Source of the DNA: Selaginella moellendorffii
Taxonomy: Eukaryota; Plantae; Lycopodiophyta
Direction of reading: 5' to 3'
NCBI RefSeq assembly: GCF_000143415.4
Contig: NW_003314313.1
Coordinates: forward strand, 1,394,605 to 1,451,693
Length of the DNA: 57,089 nt
Positions 15,877 to 17,024 of this stretch are shown piece by piece; position 1 is the stretch's first letter, and each line of letters starts with the position of its first letter. The notes under the pieces are model-generated. The model searched no databases and was not told the origin of the DNA. It worked only from the letters and a program-made list of their open reading frames with translations. The translations under genes were made by a program, and so were the position numbers.

Positions 15877-17024
15877 TGTCGCGCATGTGACTTCGGGTAT
15901 CGAAAGTTACCTGTCGACTAGTCCTTACGGACACTCTTACCTTACTGCCACGATGGCAGGAGGTCGGTATTGCTGGACCCTTTATCAGTCCCTCTTGTGC
16001 TAGTGGAGTTAACTGGGCATTTCGAGTGTACTTAGACCGGACGAGCATAAGGACGGAATTCCTACGTGTTATTAGCTAAGCATACTTAGCCCGGTAAGGA
16101 GTTCCCGTCTCGTTTTGTCTTGCACTGGCTAGTGACAAGAACCCTCGCGTATTGAGATTGGTCCCTCAATATCGCTACATGATAGCTTACCGTGTCTGCC
16201 AAACACCCTCGCTATCATGCCCTTTGTGTTAGTCTCATTTCGGTCCCAAATGCTATTTATGGAAAGTGTCCAGATTTGCTCATTTGGCATATCTACGGAA
16301 TGTAGAGATCGGCCTGAACACAATGGTGTTTGTCCCATGTCCAAATTCGCAATCTAAGGACATTCCATATTTAGTAAGTTTCGAGCTTGTCCCAGAGACT
16401 AACTCCTGATACTAAGGGAGGCTTGGGGTGAAAGCCCAAAGCGTGTGTTCCTCAAGGGGGGGGGGGGCTGTGGGGGGTTCCAAATGTATAGTAGGGATAG
16501 TGGGTAGGTCGGGCATGGCCGACCAACCTGAGGCATAGTCTAGCTCCCGCTTGCGTGCCTGTCCTTGTTCTGCGTCCGGCTTGGGTCTAAGCCCAAGTTC
16601 CATTCCATGCTAGCTGGTGGAGTACCCATATCCTCACATTAGGCCACCGGTATGCCGAAATAGCGCCAGACTCCGTTTGGCTCCGTTTTGCGTGCTGGTC
16701 CTGGCATTGGTATGCTGGTTGCTCCAGGACTGTTCCAAGTCGCTCCGGGCTCCTGTCCCTTCGCTCCTTGGGCTATATGCTCGGGAGTTGCTCCGTGGTC
16801 CGGTTCCACCACTCCTTGGCGTCACGCTTGGGAGTTTGGCACCGTTCCTTCGTTCAGTGGCCCAAGGCCCTGAACCTTGGGTTCCTAAGGACACGTGGCA
16901 TGGACACGTGGCATGTGACACGTGGCATCTGTCACGTGGCACAAAGAGGGTTTAGGTTCCGCTTCGTGGTGTTATCCTATGGTAAATCACCATAGGATAA
17001 AGGGTCAAAACCACGTGCGCTACA
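15877..17024 (+). mobile_element. Family A 5' LTR (1148 bp)
   Basis: TGTCGCG...GCGCTACA termini followed by a PBS. Confidence 0.95.
16425..16502 (+). promoter_or_regulatory. Pol I core-promoter copy inside family A LTR
   Basis: Near-identical to 4588-4663, including TATAGTAGGGATAGTG. Confidence 0.8.

Follow-up and report, generated by a model that had tools for sequence, protein, structure and literature searches.

Mobile elements are known to borrow RNA polymerase III (Pol III) promoters, as SINEs, Cassandra, Helenus and Ajax do, or to ride on RNA polymerase I (Pol I) transcripts, as do R1 and R2. Cassandra is a TRIM with a copy of the 5S rRNA gene in its LTR and a transcript starting in the 5' LTR, and its promoters reportedly track changes of the host 5S promoter. 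Helenus and Ajax ("TRIMp3"; Kojima 2024, PMC10886601) carry LTR promoters originating from host RNA genes, and one Helenus family was described from the spikemoss Selaginella moellendorffii (PMC10886601). Their promoters are Pol III promoters derived from tRNA or 5S sequences, and PMC10886601 names p3 and p2 classes but no Pol I class.

Other mobile elements are associated with the 35S rDNA. The RNA of the R1 and R2 non-LTR elements, which reside in 28S genes, is made by Pol I (PMC8789037), and R2 shows that RNA made by Pol I can serve retrotransposition. R1 and R2 have no promoter of their own, are co-transcribed with the pre-rRNA, and are site-specific, coding and devoid of LTRs. The Daphnia piggyBac DNA transposon Pokey/mPok is an rDNA resident containing repeats of ~200 bp that originate from the intergenic spacer of the rDNA and are found upstream of the transposase gene, not at the U3/R border of an LTR. 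The Arabidopsis SP1/SP2 and the Xenopus spacer promoters and enhancer repeats are duplicates of the gene promoter able to start Pol I; these immobile copies are products of tandem duplication inside the spacer.

The spikemoss rDNA described here hosts LTR elements of two families (A and B) and a solo LTR (C) that carry a copy of the promoter preceding the 35S transcription unit. They resemble Cassandra in being non-autonomous and in having the promoter of a host rRNA gene in the LTR, the A and C modules staying 91-95% like the gene promoter. Cassandra has an internal 5S Pol III promoter, a Pol III terminator, a length of 565-860 bp and an 18-bp R, whereas the spikemoss elements have an upstream 35S Pol I promoter, a length of 7-8 kb and LTRs of 1.1-1.9 kb. 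With no 5S or tRNA sequence in their LTRs and a module that matches the 35S spacer, they fall outside the Cassandra/TRIMp3 type. They also differ from R elements, since they have LTRs and have inserted into the spacer, the 18S region and each other. Module copies found in 241-bp spacer subrepeats resemble the spacer promoters of other organisms, and an LTR inserted in the spacer provides one further copy of this kind. No LTR element with a 35S/Pol I promoter was found in the literature searched, in which coverage of subscription journals was limited; the earlier note on this DNA likewise knew of no described equivalent. A 2024 review whose table covers transposon sequences of rDNA origin holds no 35S-promoter case, and neither this table nor the TRIMp2/TRIMp3 scheme includes LTR elements that possess a Pol I promoter of their own.

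The rDNA array and its LTR elements

The window, a stretch of 57,089 nucleotides of S. moellendorffii DNA, is an rDNA array of plant type whose spacer includes linked 5S genes (Table 1); it is fragmented by LTR elements and segmental duplications. The 5S genes follow the 26S genes by ~2.5 kb and are linked to the 35S units; the one on the minus strand belongs to an inverted part of the spacer in which element B is likewise inserted. The 18S gene of unit 2 (26776-27456) breaks off at ~27456, near its nt 605, where a duplicated A block interrupts it, and the 26S gene of unit 3 (52269-54551) is missing ~1124 nt at its start and contains additional gaps. Units 2 and 3 are damaged, and this part of the array looks degenerate.

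Table 1. Features of the rDNA window. Positions are those of the window; +1 is the predicted start of transcription.
Feature	Coordinates	Strand	Remarks
rDNA unit 1, complete	18S 6704-8513; 5.8S 8834-8987; 26S 9021-12409; 5S 14974-15092
5S genes	14974-15092; 36520-36638(-); 56884-57002		Rfam
Promoter module, unit 1	4554-4663	+	+1 at 4654
Promoter module, other spacer copies	24623-24732; 47594-47702		+1 of the former at 24723
Four 241-bp spacer subrepeats	12744-13541	+	each with a degenerate module copy
Three more 241-bp spacer subrepeats	54904-55439		degenerate module copies
A element inserted in spacer	15354-22840
Target-site duplication of A	15349-15353 (left); 22841-22845 (right)		ACGCT
LTR A, full 5' LTR	15877-17024	+	1148 bp, TG..CA ends
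Module in LTR A	16392-16502	+	~-100 to +10; +1 at 16493, LTR nt 617
Primer-binding site of A	17027-17037	+	TGGTATCAGAG, 2 nt past LTR A
Polypurine tract of A	21681-21692	+	AGGGGGGGAGAG, abuts 3' LTR A
3' LTR A	21693-22840	+	module 22208-22318
LTR A copy at window start, cut	1-764	-	module 139-249
Older truncated LTR A (nt 1-871)	765-1633	-	93.8% identical; module 1010-1118
LTR A copy, 3' LTR	20265-21412	-	polypurine tract 21413-21424; head to head with LTR 21693
LTR A copy	27807-28954	-	in 1.6-kb block duplicated from 19883-21517
LTR A copy with primer-site region	35111-36258	-	primer-site region 35110-34972; in inverted spacer segment
Family B element	37224-45035	+
Target duplication of B	37219-37223; 45036-45040		CCCCC
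5' LTR B	37224-39076	+	1853 bp; module 38050-38158; +1 ~38150, LTR nt 927/1853
Primer site of B	39080	+	TGGTATCAGAGC; same TGGTATCAGAG(C) type as A
Polypurine tract of B	before 43170		GGGTGGTGGAG
3' LTR B	43170-45035	+	1866 bp; 98.3% identical to 5' LTR; module 44007-44114
Solo LTR C	33820-34967	-	ends TGTAAGG..GGCTTACA; target duplication GATAG; module 34508-34619; +1 ~34518

Families A and B have direct LTRs with TG..CA ends, a primer-binding site, a polypurine tract and a 5-bp target duplication. The primer site TGGTATCAGAG of A is presumably of the initiator tRNA-Met type found in plant LTR elements. The longest stop-free stretch encodes 121 aa in the A interior and 138 aa in the B interior, and ten of the longest such stretches of both interiors gave no Pfam match at E values up to 0.1; degraded remnants might lie below the sensitivity of this search. 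A and B are non-autonomous LARD-like LTR retrotransposons without gag/pol coding capacity. One A copy contains solo LTR C and the other lacks it, so that its insertion postdates the separation of the two copies. This arrangement, together with the target duplications, primer sites, polypurine tracts and LTR pairs of 99.9% (A) and 98.3% (B) identity, indicates that A, B and C are real, recently mobile elements. Just 5' of their polypurine tracts, A (21650-21692) and B (43128-43169) have in common a hairpin with a 6-bp stem and the loop AGGA. Its stem features a compensatory change (TCGACG/CGTCGA versus TCGATG/CATCGA), the interiors being otherwise unalike. The hairpin may be a common signal for the reverse transcriptase of one helper, and hints at related helpers.

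The LTRs of the A element in the spacer (15877-17024 and 21693-22840) are 99.9% identical to each other. Across the copies at 20265-21412(-), 21693-22840(+), 27807-28954(-) and 35111-36258(-), identity to the first of these two LTRs is 99.7-100%. The LTR end at 36258 adjoins the target site of the 15354-22840 element in reverse complement (AGCGT, 36259-36263). Blocks 19883-21517 and 27425-29059 are 99.5% duplicates, large blocks of the window being 99.5-100% identical to each other. With target site and flanks in common and blocks duplicated, most A LTRs of the window are not independent: most A copies descend from one spacer insertion and were spread by duplication of the array. The older copy at 765-1633 is the only clearly separate LTR A, and it also has the module. 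The treatment of the seven A LTRs as seven witnesses was rejected on account of their common target site and flanks; so was the assignment of 27807-28954 and 35111-36258 to one simple element, whose flanks mismatch (TCAAA versus AGCGT).

Several rearrangements accompany the A copies. A 135-bp spacer piece from upstream of the promoter (4353-4487, ~-301 to -167) is present inverted and 100% identical at 15742-15876. It is flanked there by a truncated LTR A (15354-15747, nt 1-394) on one side and by the full-length LTR on the other, which shows that spacer DNA was recently joined to LTR A. A 280-bp palindrome (21413-21692), located between LTR(-) 20265-21412 and LTR(+) 21693-22840, consists of two facing A 3' ends, each with polypurine tract and ~140 nt of interior; it results from a rearrangement or else from faulty assembly. 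The non-coding A interior of ~3.1 kb occurs three times (1633-3099, 17174-20248 and 30440-33807) with 89-96% identity. In unit 1 it abuts the spacer directly at 3104, the remainder of the element being deleted.

The rDNA gene promoter in the spacer

The initiator TATAGTAGGG is found ~2.05 kb 5' of each 18S gene, the predicted +1 (the A before GGG) preceding 18S by 2050, 2053 and 2049 nt in the three units. It matches the plant Pol I initiator type TATA(R)TA(N)GGG, for which the Brassica initiation sequence TATATAAGGGG serves as a comparison. The module around TATAGTAGGG spans ~-100 to +10 and has two boxes: GGGTGAAAGCCCAAAGCG, at ~-65 to -46, is the upstream element, and CCAAAAGTATAGTAGGG, at -13 to +4, is the core/initiator. 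A profile search identified seven weaker copies in the 241-bp subrepeats past 26S, in which the upstream element is intact, the core degenerate and the spacing unchanged. By analogy, these copies resemble the classical spacer-promoter layout of the Arabidopsis GP, SP1 and SP2 promoters. The presence of degenerate copies in the spacer subrepeats argues that the module is native to the rDNA and that the LTRs are its recipients.

The start of the pre-rRNA was located by mapping three stranded RNA-seq runs (~1.4 Gb sampled from each) and one contig set on positions 21560-25800. The libraries are ordinary cDNA, perhaps poly(A)-selected. In the three runs depth is 0 in all bins from 21560 to 24683, reaches 3.8-6.3 in bin 24684-24825, and is then 4-15 across most of the 5'ETS and ~1-5 in its last bins. 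All read pairs are oriented as expected for plus-strand RNA. The first bin being half-filled, the 5' end of the pre-rRNA lies between ~24680 and 24765; the start is thus known to one 142-nt bin and falls within ~40 nt of the predicted +1 at 24723. The earlier note had proposed that the segment found in the LTRs is the start region of the pre-rRNA, and this is borne out by the sense RNA that begins in bin 24684-24825, by the fit to the plant initiator and by the copies in the subrepeats. The spacer segment from -100 to +10 is the gene promoter of this rDNA, of the plant Pol I type, with the pre-rRNA start resolved to ~40 nt.

Nearly all reads carry a 5'ETS variant that departs from units 1, 2 and 3 alike at no fewer than 8 sites. 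The differing sites lie in 24973-25737 and include 25352 (C>T), 25360 (G>A) and 25376 (T>G); at 24973 and 25097 the reads agree with unit 3 only. Either the dominant expressed rDNA variant is none of these units, and the array of the window may be silent in these samples, or the plants sampled are not identical to the reference.

Two further sequence motifs were observed in the promoter region. A run of 10 to 13 G separates the upstream box from the core (4617-4627, 16456-16468, 34541-34553 and 47657-47666). Its length differs among spacer units and LTR copies, and family B has GACCCTGGGGGG in its place with the overall spacing kept. The G-box-like 12-mer ATGCCACGTGTC occurs 60 times in the window with at most one mismatch, against 0.2 expected. 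More than 15 copies per spacer unit lie upstream of the promoter (3106-4168, 22877-24237 and 45978-47209). Near the end of LTR A (16890-16928, nt ~1014-1052) are three tandem copies with at most one mismatch and a spacing of 13-14 bp, followed by a looser fourth, while none was found in LTRs B and C. This 12-mer may be a second rDNA-type control motif common to the spacer and LTR A. A metagenome scan with the two-box pattern of the promoter gave no match, and no outgroup was obtained.

The promoter module in the LTRs

The 25-mer centred on the initiator has 11 matches in the window with up to three mismatches, against none expected from shuffled sequences. Three lie in the spacers (4639, 24708 and 47678) and seven at the A LTRs that the earlier note had listed as carrying the module; all seven of those places are confirmed, but the copies do not count as independent given their common target site and duplicate blocks. 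The eleventh match, at 34509-34533(-), is additional to that list. The near-identity of the module with the sequence 2 kb 5' of each 18S, also pointed out in the earlier note, holds at 91-94% over 78 nt. LTR positions 16425-16502 and spacer positions 4588-4663 are identical in 74 of 79 aligned columns (93.7%), and the spacer copies of the other two units show 91-92% identity to the same LTR segment. BLAST lengthens the match between LTR A and the spacer to an island of 112 nt with 84% identity (LTR nt 516-626, corresponding to 4554-4663).

Over the segment from -100 to +10, identity is 0.84 between spacer and A, 0.86 between spacer and C, 0.85 between A and C, and 0.66-0.70 in comparisons with B. 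Among the LTR modules, that of solo LTR C comes nearest to the spacer copy, with 94.8% over the core 77 nt. Upstream and downstream flanks of 200 nt are at shuffle level (0.47-0.53), with the exception of a CCGAGT-type microsatellite common to B and C upstream, and the module borders are identical in all pairs compared. In LTR B the upstream box and the core/initiator align gap-free to the spacer while the G-rich middle differs, a pattern expected of two protein-binding boxes at fixed spacing. A variant specific to LTR A is a T replacing the A at -8. A search of the LTRs for a terminator or other rDNA pieces yielded only the microsatellite of B and C and a 19-nt box match. No 5S match was found inside any LTR with Rfam, whose 5S matches are confined to the three spacer 5S genes.

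LTRs B and C are distant relatives of one another. LTR A shares with them the module and nothing else, so that the module is present in at least two unrelated LTR lineages. In A, B and C it occupies a mid-LTR position, and in A and B it faces the primer site; solo LTR C has no primer site against which an orientation could be defined. In LTR A the predicted +1 at 16493, nt 617 of 1148, faces TGGTATCAGAG at 17027, in agreement with the mid-LTR position and direction towards the primer-binding site reported before. The comparison of LTR A with its older copy finds the module no better conserved than its 600-nt surroundings, in a test without power: the changes concentrate at nt 101-250 and nt 250-870 are equally clean. 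The sole change within the module concerns the length of the G run. Altogether, the capture of the promoter by LTR elements is solid.

Proposed transcription of the elements and its implications

It is an inference that the LTRs use the cassette, that Pol I is the polymerase and that the transfer went from rDNA to LTR. The most likely reading, with about even chances, is that the module is the promoter of the LTRs and recruits Pol I to transcribe the elements. Two unrelated non-autonomous lineages, A and B/C, have acquired the rDNA promoter cassette, on which the Pol I initiation factors would assemble. The element RNA would start at the A before GGG (nt 617 in LTR A, nt ~927 in B and nt ~450 in C), a site that would divide the LTR into an upstream U3 and a remaining R-U5. 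It would extend across U5 and the primer site, then along the non-coding interior into the 3' LTR, and would be reverse-transcribed in trans by an autonomous partner, in a Cassandra-like manner with Pol I replacing Pol III. Being non-coding, such an RNA would need no cap for translation.

The earlier note had proposed a non-coding LTR element transcribed by Pol I. The element is genuine and non-coding and has the module at the expected U3/R border, but the start at nt 617 is unsupported by LTR reads: the three stranded RNA-seq runs gave 0 reads on LTR A, with a depth of 4-15 in the 5'ETS. This absence is weak evidence, because the expressed variant differs from the units of the window, and it does not amount to silence in every tissue. 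The contig set is clearly RNA, as its depth is 2000-4900 in the 5'ETS against 3.5-5 in the untranscribed spacer. One of its contigs (253 nt, depth 9) links LTR nt 1003-1148 (U5) to the primer-site region; this is the content expected of RNA started in the LTR, yet it is too near background to count. TATAAA and AATAAA-like hexamers are lacking in LTRs A, B and C, where only ~3-5 are expected by chance, which agrees weakly with transcription by Pol I. Pol I transcripts are uncapped and nucleolar. This speaks against a Pol I origin of the element RNA, which must reach the particles of the helper element.

The absence of LTR A RNA in the three runs would also fit a cassette that derives from the rDNA but is not used by Pol I in the LTR. 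It would then serve Pol II, with TATAGTA as a TATA box and a start ~30 nt downstream, or be a tolerated passenger of an LTR whose true promoter is elsewhere. Plant Pol I initiators do look like TATA boxes, and in the comparison of LTR A with the older copy the conservation of the module does not exceed that of its neighbourhood. This explanation is nevertheless rather unlikely. Three LTR families conserve, at fixed spacing, both the upstream element (-65 to -46) and the first 10 bases of the transcript, for which a TATA box alone is insufficient, and a passenger is not expected to keep its borders, mid-LTR place and orientation in unrelated families. It is also improbable that the promoter is an array-local patch, gained through conversion or recombination only by LTR copies resident in the rDNA and missing from dispersed active copies. 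The heavy rearrangement of the stretch, the inverted spacer piece between two LTR A copies (15742-15876) and the location of every element observed in the window inside rDNA would suit such a patch. Conversion, however, requires homology, and the LTRs have none to the spacer beyond the patch, which is found at a corresponding mid-LTR position in three families, on both LTRs of B and also in the 6% diverged older A copy. Moreover, the patch differs from the spacer by ~15%, which excludes a recent conversion.

Transfer in the reverse direction, whereby an LTR fragment became the rDNA promoter through concerted evolution and the LTRs keep the ancestral promoter, appears very improbable. Spacers do accumulate transposon remnants, the module of solo LTR C is nearest to the spacer (94.8%, core 77 nt) and the similarity is sharply bounded on the rDNA side too. 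Against this stand an initiator that matches a motif common to distant plants, the older degenerate cassette copies arranged in the 241-bp subrepeats in the usual layout of Pol I spacer promoters, and a spacer copy devoid of any flanking LTR end, primer site or target duplication.

If the LTRs are indeed transcribed by Pol I from the captured module, all three nuclear polymerases would be recruitable by retrotransposons. The elements could tentatively be assigned to a class of LTR elements with their own Pol I promoter ("p1", beside the Pol II and Pol III classes), an assignment with somewhat less than even chances of being right. It would comprise long non-coding elements with nucleolar transcription from a captured copy of the host rDNA promoter that co-evolves with it. 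This would explain how non-coding elements of 7-8 kb, too long for Pol III, are transcribed without a Pol II promoter. The LTRs would provide natural ectopic Pol I promoters for studies of nucleolar targeting and silencing, and a "natural deletion analysis" that delimits the lycophyte Pol I promoter to ~-100 to +10, with two boxes at fixed spacing. With every insertion into a spacer, the array would moreover gain another Pol I start site. The elements also bear on how rDNA spacers acquire extra promoters.
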